Of a stretch of DNA of 64,000 nucleotides, positions 546-8,311 are shown in pieces (position 1 is the stretch's first letter; each line of letters begins with the position of its first letter). A program made the translations under genes and the position numbers. The DNA is from Amoeboaphelidium protococcarum X5 (Eukaryota > Fungi > Aphelidiomycota), in NCBI GenBank assembly GCA_023515725.1, contig JALDTO010000206.1, positions 516,189 through 580,188 on the forward strand. The letters run 5' to 3'. The notes beneath the pieces are model-generated. The model was not told the DNA's origin. It ran no database searches and saw only the letters and a list, made by a program, of their open reading frames with translations.

Positions 546-2189
546 ATGATTAGATCTGCTGTATTTTCTAGATGTCTACCCGCTAGCCGGGTTCTGAAGC
601 TATCCAAGAGGTCTCTTGCCACTCCGGTCAGTAGCAGTGATGAGCCTAACTTTATGGAGTCAGTGTCCATCTATTTTGACAAGGTAAGTTCTGTATTCTG
701 TGCATCAGTATCTTTAAAGCAATTGTTTATTATTGTAGGCTGCATCCATATCCAAGATTGATAGTGCAACGTTGGCGCACATGAAGGCGACCGATGCTGT
801 GTTGAGTATTACTTTCCCCATCTAGAGAGAAGATGGTTCGTTTGAAGTGATCGAAGCCTATCGCTGTCATGATAGTCGTCATAGACTTCCGGTCAAGGGT
901 GGTATCAGGTTTAGTACCGACGTCGACCTGCAAGAAGTTAAGGCACTGGCTGCGTTGATGACGTACAAGAATGCTATAGTTGATGTTCCTTACGGCGGTG
1001 GAAAGGGAGGTATTAAGGTAGGATTATTGAATTATGTTTGTTTTAGCTGACTTGTTTGCTAACTTACGTTCTGTGTATTGTTATATCAGCTTTGTAGATT
1101 GATCCCAGAAAGTACACGGTTCATGAGCTGGAGCGTATTACTCGTCGCTATACTATGGAGTTGATTTAGCGCAATTTTATCGGTCCTCATGTTGATATTC
1201 CAGCGCCTGATGTGGGAACAAGTGGGCGTGAAATGTCTTGGATCTGCGATACGTACAGACAGATTAGTTACACTGATGTTAATGCCCTGGCTTGTGTGAC
1301 TGGTAAACCAATCTCTCAGGGTGGTATACGTGGTAGACTGGAAGCGACTGGTTATGGAGTTTTCTGTGCCACTCAGGAGTTTCTTTCATATCCAGAGGTT
1401 TAGAAATTGACTGGTCTTGATGATAGCTTCAAGGATAAGCGTATCATTATCCAAGGTTTTGGTAATGTTGGTTACTGGAGCGCCAAGTTCTTTTCCCAAG
1501 CCGGAGCCAAGATTATCGGTGTTATTGAGAAGGATGTTGCACTCTTGAATGAAGATGGTATTAATGTCGCGGCATTAGAGGCTCACAAGTTAAAGACTGG
1601 TGGATTTAAGAATTTCTCTGGTGCGAAGAATATTGATTCCAACTTTAACTAATTACTGGAACATGACTGTGATATCCTAGTACCAGCAGCGATGGAGATG
1701 TAGATCACAAAGAACAACATGAAGCAAATTAGAGCCAAGATAATTGCAGAGGCTGCTAATGGACCTTTAACTCCTAAAGCTCACGAGTATTTAATCAGTA
1801 AGAACGTGGTGATTGTCCCTGATTTGTTGTGCAATGCTGGAGGTGTCACCACGAGCTATTTCGAAGTTTTGAAGAACCTCTCTCACGTTCGTATGGGCAG
1901 ATTAAATCGCCGCTTTGACCAGAAGGGAAAGACATCTATGGTTGCGCTGTACGAGTAGATTGCCGGCAAGCAGCTGGATGAACAGGAGCGTAAGGCTCTG
2001 ATTAGTGGAGCGGATGAGAGTCAGCTGGTGTATAGCGGTATTGAAGACACGATGATCACTAGTTGCGAAGAGACTAGATAAACTGCCGCCAAGTAGAAGA
2101 ATATTGATTTCCGTACTGCCGCTTATCTGAATGCTATCGACAAGATTGCCACCAGCTACCTTGGAAGCGGAATAATGTTTATGCGTTGA
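546..2189 (+). CDS. GDH: Mitochondrial glutamate dehydrogenase, animal/protist (GLUD1-like) type; exons 546-683, 739-1017, 1098-2189
   Basis: Motifs [50 protein letters not shown] and [11 protein letters not shown]. Two GT-AG introns; in-frame TAR read as Gln. Confidence 0.95.
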
Positions 2190-2359: not shown

Positions 2360-3166
2360 TCACTTGGAAGTGTTCAGCGGCGGACCAAAGAACGTTACTC
2401 CAACAGGCTTACCGATGACATCGTTCAGCTTTTGCATGTAATCTTCCAACTTGAGCCAGCCTTCAGATGCGTGGAACTCTTCGACAAAGTCAGCACGTCT
2501 GATCAATAAAGTTGCTGGGAAATAGCCAGCTTCATACCATTCCATCATCTCCAGACCAGAGAACGGACCTTAAATGTCACCTTGAGGATCTTTGTACTAC
2601 CACAAAGTCTATGGCAGAGCATTGATAGGAATATCATGCGTTGGCAAGGCATTAACCATCTCGTTCATGGTGAAAGTACCATTAGCAAAAGTACCGCCCA
2701 TAGCCCCAACGTCCCACGCATTGTTATCCACATACTTGTTGTATTGTTGACGAGAATTACCGCGTCCACCACCTCTGCCACCACGGCCTCTACCCCCGCG
2801 TCCACCACGGCCGCGATTACCTCTTACTTGTTGGAATCCACCATTACGTGCCCCGGCAGCTTCTCTTCTCTCTGCCTGATTGGCGCGCTTAGTAGCCACA
2901 TCGCTATTCCACGAGCCGCTCTCACGGATAGCCTGCTCTTCTTCAGTCAGCTCAGTGCCATGTACAACATCCTAACTCTGCTCGGCCACCACCACCTTGT
3001 AGTCTACAGCCTTCTTTGCCAACACCTGATCAGTGACATTACCATCAGCATCGGTACCACTGTCTTCAGCCAACTTAAAGTAGTCTGGGCATTCCACCTT
3101 CTTGAAAAGAGAGTACATAAAATCTAGAGAGTAAAATTTAGTTTCGCTCTATTCTGCCATTGTCAT
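2360..3166 (-). CDS. GYF-domain protein with RGG tract (short GIGYF/Smy2-like), 268 aa
   Basis: [28 protein letters not shown] GYF domain; RGRGGRGG repeats; single frame from ATG 3166 to TGA 2360. Confidence 0.85.
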
Positions 3167-3339
3167 TACGCGTTATCAAGATTATATAAATTGATGACTG
3201 TTCAGTATTGTTGCGAGAGAAGAGAAGAACGGCGCTGACAGTCGAACAGCTTTACTGACGCGCGAATGAAGAAAAACTCGAAAAGTCCACTCAGCTGAAG
3301 GAGAACCAAGATAATGTAGATAGTGTATGAAAACGGTAT

Positions 3340-4250
3340 TTTATTTAATTTCAGACGGCGCATAGACGTAAAAGTCAGGTCCACCATCGGATTCTTCTTA
3401 CCAGAGTCACGCCATAAACCTGAGCACCTTCCATCCTTTCAGCGAGGTTCTTGGCGTCAGTGAGATAGACAGCACCATACAGCTTCCCAAACACGTCAGT
3501 TTTTCCGTTACTTTCCAGATCCCTCTTCACATTAGCGTATTGCCACGGCTTTTCCTTGACATTGACGGCAATAGAACAGCCGTATCCATCAGAAAGCAGC
3601 GTGACTTCGTCTACATCAACTGCAATCTTCCGAAGTCGGGTCTTCTTCAGGTTGATAATAGACTTGACAGAACACGCAGATAGAGATTAGATGCCAGAGT
3701 AGTGCAAGACTCTCTTGTCCACTTAAACATATCGTGGGACATCAGTACTCATAGGAAAGATGCTGAAGGTAGGCACATCTAGCCCTTATGTCTCACCACG
3801 CAGGTATTTCATGTATAGCAGAAGTGACTACTACCCCATCAGACTGTCGAAGGCAGGCCCAGCGCGAGACTTCATACTGAGCTGCTGACGACTTCGAGCT
3901 CTACCTTGTTTGTGGACACCAACTTTCTTTGCCAGATTTCGAGGACTCCTTCTCTGCATAACATATTCACGGCGAGGCTCTGGAGGCTCATACGAGGAGG
4001 TGACAATATCCAAGAGGAAACTACAGTGAACTTTCGTAAACCAGAACAGATCTTCATCCCAATCCATCTGATTATAGATCTGCGATACCAGTTTTGCATC
4101 AGCCACCTCCTAATGTTCCTGATCGTCAGCATCGTACTCCGCAGAAATGGAGACTTTAACCGAGCGGTCCAACAGCAGCAACTCTGGATGATCAAACTGA
4201 AATGCCTCACTTATTATTATTATTATTAAATCATTTATTTATACAGACAC
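3340..4250 (-). pseudogene. Truncated, frameshifted Fanzor1 (eukaryotic TnpB-family nuclease) remnant
   Basis: Frame 4250-3375 is open in table 6: LLLYMKYL...PTFSIFPMSTDVPRYVQVDKRVL...LLSDGYGCSI...AQVYGV. A 1-nt frameshift at about 3409 restores RuvC-I-like GV-D-SGKKNPMV. No RuvC-II/III or zinc finger follows. Confidence 0.75.
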
Positions 4251-5828
4251 TCAATGTGTACATCTGTTTATGCCTTTGAACTTTAGTTCAAGGTTTGAAT
4301 GCAACAATTGACCTCCACAACGGTTTTGTTTGTTTTTTCATTGTTTGTTCTCACGACTTTGATCTCGCACCCATTGAATGTAAGTATCGTCCATGCATTA
4401 CTCTTTAAATACCGCCACTGCTTTATATTAGCTCCTTTAGTGGTAGGTACAGACATACTTTCTCTGCGGATGTAGCGGGCCGTCTTCTATCTCTGAATGA
4501 TAAAACAATACTAAGAGGATAATAGATCGGCTGATTAATCGCAGTACGTAACATTCGTGAAAGTAGAAAATTTAAATACTTTAGTAATCTACACACGTTC
4601 ATTAATATCACCAGAACCAGCACTATCATTTACGAATGGTCATAGTGTTCGGCTTAACTATAGTTCGATGGAGACTAAAACTTATTGTCAGTGTAAGACG
4701 AATTCCCTGATCAGATTTTAATCACTTATACAATAGAGACATTGAACTCATCGTAGCATAAAGTATGAGATATATAGCGTCTCAATCGCGGCGTCTCTTA
4801 CCGTAGATATGAGTGAATGTGTAAAGGAACTACTATTTAGGGAGGATCACCCGCTTTGCTGAATGTTGTTTCATCTCTTTTGATCTCGACATACGATATG
4901 TGTACTGTATGTGACTGCGGTTACGCTTTTTTTTACATTAAAGATTATATTGCTAGCTTTCGCGAGGATGCTCATACAAGTCTGAGTTCGGAATCCCTCC
5001 CAATTACATGATTGTATAAATTGCCCAAGAAGATACTATGATATGCGCATCATTGTGCAAACGGGCAGATATCGCAGGAGTAATATGCAGGTACACATAG
5101 ACAAAAGATTACTTAAGGATGATGAATTACAACTCGGCAAGAATAGAATAGGTTAAACATCACCTTGCGATCAAAGTACTTTAAGACATGTTGAATAGAC
5201 GCGTTCTACTAAATGATATCGATATTAAAGGCCATTTAAGGTGAAGGCTGATGTCGGGTTGAAGCCGTTAGTTCCGAGTTGACTTGTATTAAGACTTAAG
5301 ATGAAACGCAAATGCAATAATGTGGATATTATGGCCAAATAACTTAATATGAAACGCTAATAGAATAGCCAACAAGTCAGCAAGAAGACTTAGACCCATC
5401 AAGTCTGCTTTAAGGATTGATATTATAACTGGACGTAGGTACGGTGTGTGAATGACATATGACGAAATACGCGCCAGGTTGGAGTTGGATAAGCAGCCTT
5501 TGATTTATGAAAACCAATTTACCGTTCATATTCAAGAAACTACCAATCCATAACCCTCAACATTATGCGTTTTACAGTACTACAGGTCGCCTTGAAAATG
5601 AAATCATTGCGCTTCGTTTAATAAATTCTGTCTTCTTGAAAGTGTGCTCCTTTACACATAGATTCAAATTAACTCAAATAATCAACAATGATTTAAAGTA
5701 ATTGCTATCGCGCTCATCTTCAATTATATTTGAATAGCTTTTGCATTTTTCGGTGAAAGTTCAAAGGCATGCGCGTACGGCCGTCAAATTGGCACGATTT
5801 GGCTGGCCAACTACGGCATTATTCACAA

Positions 5829-6506
5829 TCATCGAGAGAAAATCTCAAAAATCTGCCCTTCTCTCAGCTTCATTATCATCAGTTTTAATGTAGGAACATG
5901 CTACCTAGACTCTTTATAACGACTCTCAGTCCAATTAAAACCTTCAAACAGGAGACAATTGCAAAAGACGTGATAAATCGTTCTATGCTTTACTCCGCAC
6001 GGACATTAGTGACTTTTGGAGTTAAACCCCAGTTCCTCATTAAACATAAGTGGACTAAATCCACTAAGAACGTAGGTAATGAGCCTTCTGTCATCTCTAA
6101 TCTTGTCATACAGATGTAGAACATCCGCAGTATTCAGGATCTCTAAGCCACATCGTTCTCGTCTTCTCGCTCTCATTTGCATAAGCTCGTATGCAACTTT
6201 CTATTTATGCTGCTTAATACTTTCAGCAACATACCTCCTGTTACTCAGCTTTATTGCTACCGCATCCGCCTCTTCTTCAGAGTATTCGAAGGTAGGCAAT
6301 AACTTTGGAATGTCATTCTCCTCCGCTTATAGATCTGATAGTTTATGTAGAATATGGCTCTATGGCAGGCATCTCCACGCGTAGTCCGCAATAAGACGTC
6401 GTTATAGGATCGCTTCTTCTACAGACTAGAGATCATAAATGCAGTACAGTGGCTCTGCAGGACAGGAAATAAATGCTTTTAGACAACTCCTCAAAGCAAT
6501 AATGCC
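5829..6506 (-). mobile_element. 3' fragment of a non-LTR retrotransposon ORF2 (post-RT region plus CCHC zinc knuckle)
   Basis: 225-codon frame: IALRSCLKAFISCPAEPLY...LPQSHILHKL...QCPCGVKHRTIYHVFCNC. No RT core (YADD) is seen upstream. Confidence 0.7.
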
Positions 6507-6945
6507 TCATTTGGAATGTCAAAATTGAGAGCATTCAGTAGCGCAATATATAGAGCCAGCTTGCGCCCAATGATACCAAAAGGCTCCAACTAGGATGCGT
6601 TTCTAATATACAAACAGCGTAGTAGTCAGATGCCATCTTGCAGCATGCATAACGTGCCTAGCACCTAATTCATACAGGTTGGGGTTGGGACCATCCAAAT
6701 ACGCGTGACTTAATTATTGCATGACAGCAGGGCCTATCGCATCACCAAGTAACTGGGTGTGCAAACTTTAACGACCATGGGGAAACTATGAATTGCAGAG
6801 GAACTCAAGCATGGACGCAAAGTATTGCTGGTGAGACAGGTCAGGTAATTAAGTGCCTTCTTCATGCCAAACATTAAGGCAGATGTAAAGGAATCTTTAA
6901 GCAGAGGACAGAGAGGTGAAGCAGATTTTGATGTAGGCGATTGAA

Positions 6946-7090
6946 GCAGACTTATCGAAAACATCAAGCTCTATCGCATTGCAGAGCTTTTCATGCGTAT
7001 AGTGAATGCATGTTTATACCGACACACTGTTGATTGTGAGCCTGGTCAGACCCGTCCAGTATTCATGACGCCATTTGTACGAAAAGCCTA
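6946..7090 (+). mobile_element. Possible degenerate Ty3/gypsy pol fragment (pre-RT region)
   Basis: LIENIKLYRIAELF...YRHTVDCEPGQTRPVFMTPF resembles the H.I...G..PV...PY pre-RT motif; the frame has TGA stops upstream. Confidence 0.3.
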
Positions 7091-7729
7091 GTGTCCCATC
7101 TATTTAGTCGTTCAGAGGCAACTTGACGTAAATTTTAGATTGTCGTTACTTTTCAAACTTACTATCGACAATCTAAATACGTCTAAGTACTTGTTAAATC
7201 GCTGTTCATCATAGAAGATTCTTGATTTAAAAATAACATGGCACTATTCGCAAGTTTCAATCTAAACCGATTATCCGATGCCATGACAACAAGCAATGGC
7301 TGCAATTTGTACACATTTCAAAGTACCGCAAGCATGATAACAATAGCATTTTTAGGCAAGTTGCTTCGGCATCGACTTGCGACACAATTTTTTGGTTCCG
7401 AGATAATCGACAACTTTGAGCGGAGGATGTTAAAAACAACTAGCGTCTGATTTTACATTGATGTGAATTAGAGTTTAAAATCTAATGCTGATCGATTACG
7501 ATTTTTGTGAAGAACGCGACCATCTTGTCAGCCTTATCATCAAGCATATCGCTAAAGGTAGATGTCAAATAACGTGCATCGACGTGACATGTTAGCTTAG
7601 AATGGATATATATGCCTGCTACATTAAAGGTCGGGATGAGAGCGGCAAGAAGTTGTGAATGAAACGTGTGAGCGCGTTCTCCTATATTCCTTAAAACTTT
7701 TTAATCGAACATACTCTAATTTCAATACA

Positions 7730-8311
7730 ATGGCTCAAGTAGACGAATTAACCACCGATGAAAGATAGGACGAGACTTTGGAGATTATCAAGAAGCAGAA
7801 GCGGATATTTACACACTCAATGCGCAAGGCATGTTGGAAGAAGGTAATTTCATATGAGCGAATTCACTCCGCATATTTAATTCATGTAACATTACAGTAG
7901 GCTCAGACAGTGATGGGAAGAGATCCTTAACGTTGGCGCTATGACGCTGCAGGAAACCTGGTGTGCCGTGCATTGACCAACTGTCCCGGGGTACTTTGTC
8001 ATGAATATGACCACATTGTGCCGTACAGTAAAGGAGGCGACACATCCGTGGAAAATTGCCAGATTCTGCAGACGCGGGTGAATCGTCTCAAACGAGACTA
8101 TGTGGATCAAGACCGCGATCTTCTCACTCAGCACAGTATTAAACACTCATTCTCCAACTACGACATGGATATTATAGAGATCGCACTCTGGGGTGATGTC
8201 AAGCGATAACTTCAAGGATTCCCTGATATCATGCTTATGTGTGCCGTTAAGTCTGAAGACGTGAATACTGTGAAATGTGAAGACTATGTCAAGCAATAAA
8301 AGTAGCTTTGA
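7730..8311 (+). CDS. Small HNH endonuclease of the plant/algal/protist type; exons 7730-7843, 7901-8311
   Basis: CWKKAQTVMGRDPQRWRYDAAGNLVCRALTNCPGVLCHEYDHIVPYSKGGDTSVENCQILQTRVNRLK...MDIIEIALWGDV; 57-nt GT-AG intron. Confidence 0.9.

Follow-up and report, generated by a model that had tools for sequence, protein, structure and literature searches.

Can a Fanzor1 RNA-guided nuclease lie concealed in a genome that reads UAR as glutamine, and is the copy at this locus a living gene or a dead one? The question is raised by a stretch of 64,000 nucleotides (the window) from Amoeboaphelidium protococcarum, an algal parasite belonging to the aphelids, a sister lineage of fungi. Reassignment of UAR to Gln has been reported for this species (PMC5304391), and the window uses TAR as sense, given that frames closed by TGA alone reach 2,087 codons in it versus 244 in the standard code. 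An original prediction, made from the letters of the window, placed a probably dead Fanzor1 copy at 3340-4250 and proposed that a Fanzor family adapted to TAR=Gln existed in this lineage, that intact copies could be found elsewhere in the genome and that standard-code surveys could have missed them. Here, we conclude that the locus is very probably the decayed remnant of a Tc1/mariner-pogo-type DNA transposon that carried a Fanzor1 gene, spanning 3259-7594 on the minus strand (probability about 0.93; Table 1). It is a real but ordinary and long-dead member of a known family.

Table 1. Coordinates of the relic and of its neighbours in the window
Feature	Position	Strand	Remarks
Glutamate dehydrogenase (ELFV_dehydrog)	984-2186	+	in-frame TAR codons
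Small GYF-domain protein	2363-3166	-	start at 3166 or 3160; in-frame TAR codons
Filler of unknown origin replacing the rest of the gene	3259-3381	-	123 bp; homology ends at 3381/3382 after KKNPMV
Fanzor1 pseudogene, middle block	3382-4212	-	L003 ORF nt 576-1407, codons ~192-469
1-nt deletion (one G)	3407-3408	-	RuvC-I Val/Asp codon boundary GTG/GAT; from alignment to L003
Nested insertion	4213-6500	-	2,288 bp; from junction sequences; splits N-terminal from middle block
Fanzor1 pseudogene, N-terminal block (~160 codons)	6501-6989	-	L003 ORF nt 68-587, 87% nucleotide identity
Decayed pogo/Tc5-type DDE transposase fragment	7194-7594	-	upstream of the Fanzor remnant, same orientation
Stand-alone HNH-domain protein	7730-8311	+	in-frame TAR codons

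Architecture of the relic

The predicted minus frame of roughly 290 codons is present together with its motifs: positions 3378-4250 translate on the minus strand as 291 codons with no TGA and seven in-frame TAR codons, reading LYMKYLRGET-q-GLDVPTFSIFPMSTDVPRYV-q-VDKRVL, then LLSDGYGCSIAV and then GAQVYGV, after which the next frame resumes with DSGKKNPMV. The middle block of the pseudogene covers REC/WED, where F-x-[LIF]-x-P...D lies, an SDG motif of the TDG type, and GV-D(S)G, the first strand of RuvC. Its nucleotide identity to L002, L003 and L004, all intact, is 92%, and its amino acid identity to two intact 759-aa paralogues is 87-89% over 277 residues (code-6 tblastn, E 1e-145). When aligned to L003 the block contains a single indel, the loss of one G between 3408 and 3407 (nt 1380 of the L003 ORF), which bears out the deletion claimed at the first RuvC Asp. 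Paralogue contigs in public runs have one base more at 3403/3407, and beside the deletion a Pro>Ser change turns the RuvC-I DPG into DSG.

The stop-free 103-aa piece at 3378-3686 has 23 further matches in the genome with E down to 1e-50, a similarity far beyond chance. By BLASTP it matches the GenBank-derived P0001 at E 1e-10, with SDG...GV falling on residues 391-456, a stretch of that protein that takes in the SDG strands together with the first strand of RuvC. An hhalign comparison with a 29-sequence alignment puts the piece in the right position as a weak match (probability 39%, E 3e-4); the placement rests on BLASTP and on tblastn to paralogues, not on hhalign. The WED motif reads LSDGYGCS in the window and STDGFGCS or TSDGFACS in paralogues, with TDGxxxS as the consensus of alignment A2.

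The extent of 3340-4250 proved too short, because the gene copy also has an N-terminal part at 6501-6989; the reader behind the original prediction missed this block as well as the nested insertion and the transposase fragment. By tblastn the N-terminal block has 81% amino acid identity over 133 residues and a further 80% over 30 residues in a second frame. Relative to L003 it carries indels of +1, -3 and -8 nt, and the start-codon region has been replaced.

The two blocks are separated by one repeat inside another. The outer repeat (~0.74 kb) consists of 4213-4267 and 5823-6500, has a (TAA)n tail on the minus (gene) strand and is flanked at 4201-4212 and 6501-6512 by a 12-bp target duplication, AATGCCTCAYTT, the two copies of which read AATGCCTCACTT and AATGCCTCATTT. 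The inner repeat (~4268-5822, 1.55 kb) has TG...CA ends and a 4-bp duplication. Both are dispersed, with many genome copies at 69-97% identity. The insertion is nested, and the outer repeat occurs elsewhere without the 1.55-kb inner one (on C154, C214 and C264). The outer repeat is like a non-LTR retroelement or SINE, and the inner repeat may be a solo LTR; no protein domains were found in the frames of either. Public runs show the contig joints 4210>6511 and 4267>5819, and run X1 has an exact contig over 6444-6752, across the 6500/6501 junction.

Downstream of the first RuvC strand the gene gives way to filler that shows no similarity to any intact copy and is present in the genome only here and, at 85% identity, at C211. 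We rejected the idea that the filler, read on one strand or the other, is the lost 3' end of the element, given that Smith-Waterman comparisons with L003, L007 and L013 stayed at noise level. Code-6 tblastn with seven family proteins finds no RuvC-II, zinc finger or RuvC-III in the whole 64-kb window and matches only 6501-6989 and 3382-4212, in agreement with the claim of a dead copy devoid of RuvC-II/III: there is no C-terminal piece anywhere in the window. What the window copy retains is the N-terminal 57% of the Fanzor, and the element survives as three pieces, namely ~400 bp of transposase, Fanzor codons ~23-195 and Fanzor codons ~192-469. A search of the window for the left end of the element found none; the relic has neither element end and no guide-RNA region. 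Lacking the RuvC-II Glu, the zinc finger, the RuvC-III Asp and the 3' end, the window copy can neither work as a nuclease nor supply a guide.

The relic occupies the 4.5-kb spacer between the GYF-domain gene (minus strand) and the HNH-domain gene (plus strand) and evolves as neutral intergenic DNA between them. Over the window, the contigs of public runs are short, with paralogues mixed among them, and they support only some of the junctions. In X5, a biofilm metagenome run from 2013, 53% of the sampled words of 3000-7700 are found, along with a 4.7-kb contig across 3258/3259, which indicates a near-identical strain in an environmental sample. For a second sample of this organism (X6-X8), the share of these words is 40-48%.

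Fanzor1 identity and intact paralogues

Intact copies elsewhere in the genome, which had been proposed, do exist, and they fall into three subfamilies. The piece at 3378-3686 has four close matches at 82-88% amino acid identity (one on C249, two on C207 and one at C211), and by the same piece two further subfamilies lie at ~42-45% (L007/L009 type) and ~34% (L010/L013 type). The L010/L013-type subfamily has about 12 copies (at least 12) and the two others have 2 each. TGA-only ORFs of 780-847 codons are found at L002, L003, L007, L009, L010 and most L013-type loci; the intact ORFs each carry 18-27 in-frame TAR codons and no TGA, and the aphelid Fanzor proteins have 759-771 aa. The code-6 search for full-length copies that had been suggested thus yields, for the window's own subfamily, the intact 759-aa genes L002 and L003. 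Code-6 translations of L013 and L011 are 100% identical to the A. protococcarum proteins KAI3631488.1 and KAI3640795.1, so that a Fanzor family adapted to TAR=Gln is confirmed.

Two L003-type genes are intact, one on C207 and one on C249; they have 98.8% DNA identity and differ from each other by 14 synonymous and 12 non-synonymous changes. The resulting pN/pS of 0.26 indicates that the subfamily has been under purifying selection. A pooled pN/pS of 0.99 for the L013 family was discarded as invalid, with two frameshifted copies among its sequences.

The proposal that standard-code surveys missed these genes stands in part. A C-terminal profile of the intact paralogues, run against 1.84 billion proteins, has hypothetical proteins of A. 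protococcarum as its top matches; the L013-type proteins are thus in GenBank, annotated as hypothetical and with the right code, and two proteins of A. occidentale appear in the supplementary table of the Fanzor survey by Saito et al. 2023. To that extent the proposal fails. However, the window's own L003 subfamily has no close match among the profile matches, the best being a 145-aa fragment at 68% identity, and it seems absent from the public protein library. In the literature searched, we found no paper that treats Fanzor together with Amoeboaphelidium or aphelids.

Two fingerprints of the known family have been described: DPG with an alternative Glu as the molecular fingerprint of Fanzor, and a TDG motif of the WED domain as a mark of Fanzor1 (PMC10711439). 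The RuvC-I motif is GVDPGK or GIDPGK in all intact paralogues, with D-S-G behind the 1-nt deletion in the window. An alternative RuvC-II Glu stands six residues before the first [C/H]xxC, as E-YHTTKL-CSCC in L003 and L002, E-FHTSKQ-HSLC in L013 and E-PNTSKL-HAPC in L007. A second CxxC (CSNC, CQNC or CPNC) is then followed in the intact paralogues by FVDRDVNA, in which RDxNA holds the RuvC-III Asp. The RuvC-II Glu and RuvC-III regions are known from the family only and are absent from the window copy. The consensus of 29 sequences runs FxLxP...IxxD...TDGxxxS...GxDPG...DEFxTSxxCxxC...CxxC...RDVNAxxNI, and D457, E654 and D740 are almost invariant in this alignment.

The A1 C-terminal profile returned 217 proteins and extends to distant homologues from fungi, protists and metagenomes (those of Amoeboradix and Radiomyces among them) at E 1e-15 to 1e-6, which pass PF07282. 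The C-terminal piece of L003 scores 20.7 bits against PF07282 (Cas12f1-like TNB; E 4.8e-4), below the cut-off of 26.3, and the other aphelid pieces give no score with this model; Pfam gives no matches on the stop-free pieces of the window. Among solved structures searched by sequence, phmmer with the 198-aa C-terminal piece of a paralogue found none, and the A1 profile returned only a chance match to a ribosomal protein (E 0.32).

The structure comparison with SpuFz1 that had been suggested was run on an AlphaFold2 model of P0001, a member of the L013 family that is 42% identical to the window's subfamily (pLDDT 76.6, pTM 0.76). Fanzor1 structures are the top Foldseek matches, led by the Spizellomyces Fanzor (9CEY/8GKH; E 4e-17) and followed by those of Parasitella (E 4e-14) and Guillardia (E 2e-9), with Cas12b at E ~2e-4 and the Mimivirus Fanzor2 (9b0l) at E 1.5e-2. 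The motifs of the intact paralogues, the alignment of the window to P0001 and the fold of P0001 together support the Fanzor1 reading, and on this point the original prediction holds.

Carrier transposon and proposed guide RNA

The transposase fragment upstream of the Fanzor remnant has 72-73% nucleotide identity (tblastx E 9e-24) to a transposase ORF that lies upstream of an intact L003-type Fanzor on C207. That ORF has 464 codons and is on the same strand as the Fanzor. One piece of it passes Pfam DDE_1 with 33.3 bits against a cut-off of 22, and HTH_Tnp_Tc5 and IS630 give weak matches; hence, the C207 frame is a pogo-type transposase. L003-type elements have short terminal inverted repeats, with a left end TTACTGTA... 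and a right end ...TACAGTAA. The two left ends on C207 start with TTACTGTAAA ~70 bp before the transposase ATG, both beside N joints, and comparison of C207 with C249 places the right end, ...AAAATACAGTAA, 40 nt past the Fanzor stop. The order of an L003-type element is left end, pogo-like DDE transposase, ~1 kb of spacer, 759-aa Fanzor1, 40-nt tail and right end, as read from one uninterrupted stretch, C207 293405-297390. The Fanzor1 carrier is expected to be a canonical eukaryotic transposon and not IS607, and here it has a DDE_1 transposase (C207) and TA-flanked ends.

In locus L034 (C207:296000-304000), Ns at 297391-297485, 300501 and 303163 join L003-type repeats, and chimeric frames occur, with a single N linking the N-terminal part of a Fanzor to the C-terminal part of a transposase. 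We rejected an apparent tandem array of Fanzor copies on C207 on the grounds of these N-run and single-N joints and chimeric frames; it probably arose when one or a few elements were misjoined in scaffolding.

The L013-type element is 2,852 bp long, carries only the Fanzor gene and occurs in at least 10 copies at 98-100% identity with ends TA/CAGT...ACTG/TA; it is young and non-autonomous. At L026:2388-5239 and nine other loci (L024-L033), AT directly precedes the left TA/CAGT in 10/10, and the bases after the right ACTG/TA vary across the ten loci. The constant AT could be either two more bases of the element or a target or TAM-like preference (ATTA).

The right ends of the intact elements carry a candidate guide-RNA region. 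In three subfamilies the stop codon lies 11-45 nt from the right end, and structure prediction gives a GCGCC-N4-GGCGC hairpin at the end of the ORF, formed by the same codons across subfamilies. Within the last 25 codons of L003, L007, L009, L010 and L013, the CGC-GCC...GG-CGC codons are identical despite ~40% protein identity, which hints at a constraint at the nucleotide (RNA) level. A second predicted hairpin joins the last 6-7 nt of the element to their complement close to the stop codon, and its arms covary among subfamilies (TACAGT/ACTGTA, TACTGT/ACAGTA and ATACAA/TTGTAT). In Fanzor1, the terminal repeat and the target duplication are part of the guide-RNA scaffold (PMC10711439), a view with which the predicted terminal hairpins agree at the level of sequence. 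By analogy with SpuFz1, intact members may act as omega-RNA-guided nucleases, with an RNA that would span the 3' end of the ORF and the right terminal repeat. That the L003 subfamily is alive as an autonomous pogo-like transposon, with a DDE transposase and a Fanzor1 that is translated only in the TAR=Gln code and a guide RNA ending in a hairpin of the terminal inverted repeat, is a tentative proposal to which we give somewhat less than even odds. If true, the relics in the window and at C211 would show an L003-type element to have been in the lineage since before the ~12% segment divergence.

Age, alternatives and known systems

The age of the relic can be read from a paralogous segment on C211, the left and right flanks of which are 92% and 88% identical to those of the window. 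This segment shares the 3381/3382 truncation, the 123-bp filler and the transposase-to-Fanzor deletion; it lacks the nested insertion of the window and has a 400-bp deletion and a 2.75-kb insertion of its own, and its remnant carries different indels and an in-frame TGA. Given that the truncation is common to the window and to a segment that has diverged by ~12%, insertion and truncation predate the divergence of the segments, and the copy has been dead for a long time. Identity between the remnants is 87-88%, like that of the non-coding flank beside them (87.9%), and their identity to L003 is 88-91%. When window, C211 and L003 are compared over one common set of alignment columns, their distances are nearly star-like (88.2, 90.8 and 90.1%), a pattern that fits two neutral branches and one constrained branch. 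Gene conversion of the middle block by an L003-type copy, suggested by 92% identity to L003 against an apparent 84% to C211, was dismissed, given that star-like distances need no conversion.

Within the 2.75-kb insertion at C211 (L022:3954-6710, C211:209953-212709) lies another Fanzor-type gene, short and of a different kind, in minus orientation (L022 ~4065-5334); its C-terminal part is 57-60% identical to the 442-aa KAI3635164.1. An inverted 166-bp fragment like the right end of L003 adjoins it (L022 6541-6703), so that two Fanzor-type elements are adjacent at the C211 locus.

The history that we propose would begin with a transposon carrying a pogo-type transposase and Fanzor1 that inserted into the ancestral segment. 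It would have been truncated after the first RuvC strand before the window and C211 diverged. The window copy would also have lost its start codon, gained four frame-changing or other indels and been split by the 2.3-kb nested retroelement insertion.

Instead of a relic, the 291-codon frame could be a truncated gene that is still alive and codes for a domesticated WED/REC protein, able to bind RNA or DNA but with no nuclease activity. It is free of TGA throughout, and the middle block differs from L003 by 29 synonymous and 29 non-synonymous codon changes, fewer of the latter than expected under pure neutrality. However, selection acting only on the L003 lineage is expected to produce such a synonymous excess. 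The frame has no in-frame start codon and starts inside the (TAA)n tail of the inserted repeat, and the N-terminal part is 2.3 kb off and frameshifted. The C211 counterpart, with its different indels, 400-bp deletion and in-frame TGA, speaks against a living gene, and the divergence between the two equals that of non-coding flank. No public RNA run, searched as assembled contigs, contains the stretch. We therefore regard a living gene as very unlikely.

Decay of a Fanzor1 transposon is also preferred over two further readings. Pfam names none of the window pieces and the sequence search of solved structures came back empty, as might be the case for a member of a different TnpB-derived group (Fanzor2 or IS607-type TnpB) or of an unrelated family that resembled Fanzor1 in its motifs by coincidence. 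Yet the full-length paralogue matches Fanzor1 structures at E 4e-17 to 2e-9 and Fanzor2 only at 1.5e-2; the proteins, of 759-771 aa, have large REC inserts and the [S/T]DG motif, the latter described as characteristic of Fanzor1 (PMC10711439); and the gene is carried by a DDE transposon of pogo type instead of an IS607 element with a serine recombinase. Such a reading is extremely improbable. The split and truncated structure might also be thought an assembly artefact of a repeat-rich region in which the real locus is intact, given the N runs and chimeric frames of the related C207 copies and the short public contigs over the window in which paralogues are mixed. However, the window itself has no N, the exact X1 contig crosses 6500/6501, the 4.7-kb metagenome contig crosses 3258/3259, and the same truncation and filler are found independently at C211, 12-15% diverged, which makes an artefact extremely improbable.

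The relic is functionless and leaves known Fanzor biology unchanged. It is evidence of a long residence of Fanzor1 in an aphelid, written in a reassigned code, and because of that code a standard-code six-frame screen would shatter an aphelid Fanzor1 into pieces of 10-100 residues. It also offers a dated example of how a Fanzor1 element decays, by internal deletions, a nested retroelement insertion and frameshifts, and it points to intact copies and a pogo-type carrier that are candidates for nuclease tests after recoding.

Among known systems, SpuFz1 of Spizellomyces punctatus (PDB 8GKH, 9CEU-9CEZ) is the best match of the aphelid paralogue model, with a target-normalised TM of ~0.6. The aphelid proteins have the motif order F-x-L-x-P...D, [S/T]DG, G-x-DPG, alternative Glu, CxxC and RDxNA in common with SpuFz1, PpFz (Parasitella) and GtFz (Guillardia), and, as with SpuFz1, a eukaryotic DNA transposon carries the gene at its 3' end, the aphelid stop being only ~40-45 nt from the right end. 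Unlike SpuFz1, to which their sequence identity is only 12-14%, they are longer (759-771 versus ~600-640 aa) with disordered inserts, have His instead of Cys as the first zinc ligand in two subfamilies and are encoded with 18-27 TAR=Gln codons. The L003-type element resembles the Fanzor1-carrying transposons of the Tc1/mariner superfamily in its short terminal inverted repeats and in the DDE_1 transposase of pogo/Tc5 type that lies upstream of its Fanzor1 gene. Fanzor2 and IS607 TnpB are compact (~400-500 aa) and are carried by an IS607-type element with a serine-recombinase TnpA, whereas the aphelid proteins of 759-771 aa have a DDE_1 transposase as partner and match Fanzor2 weakly. With bacterial TnpB (IS200/IS605 and IS607) and Cas12 they have in common the RuvC fold with a zinc-finger insertion, and Cas12b/f/g/h/i are weaker structural matches of the paralogue model. 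They differ from TnpB and Cas12 in having DPG in place of D-hydrophobic-G, the Glu in its alternative position, a eukaryotic DDE transposon as carrier and a much larger REC lobe.
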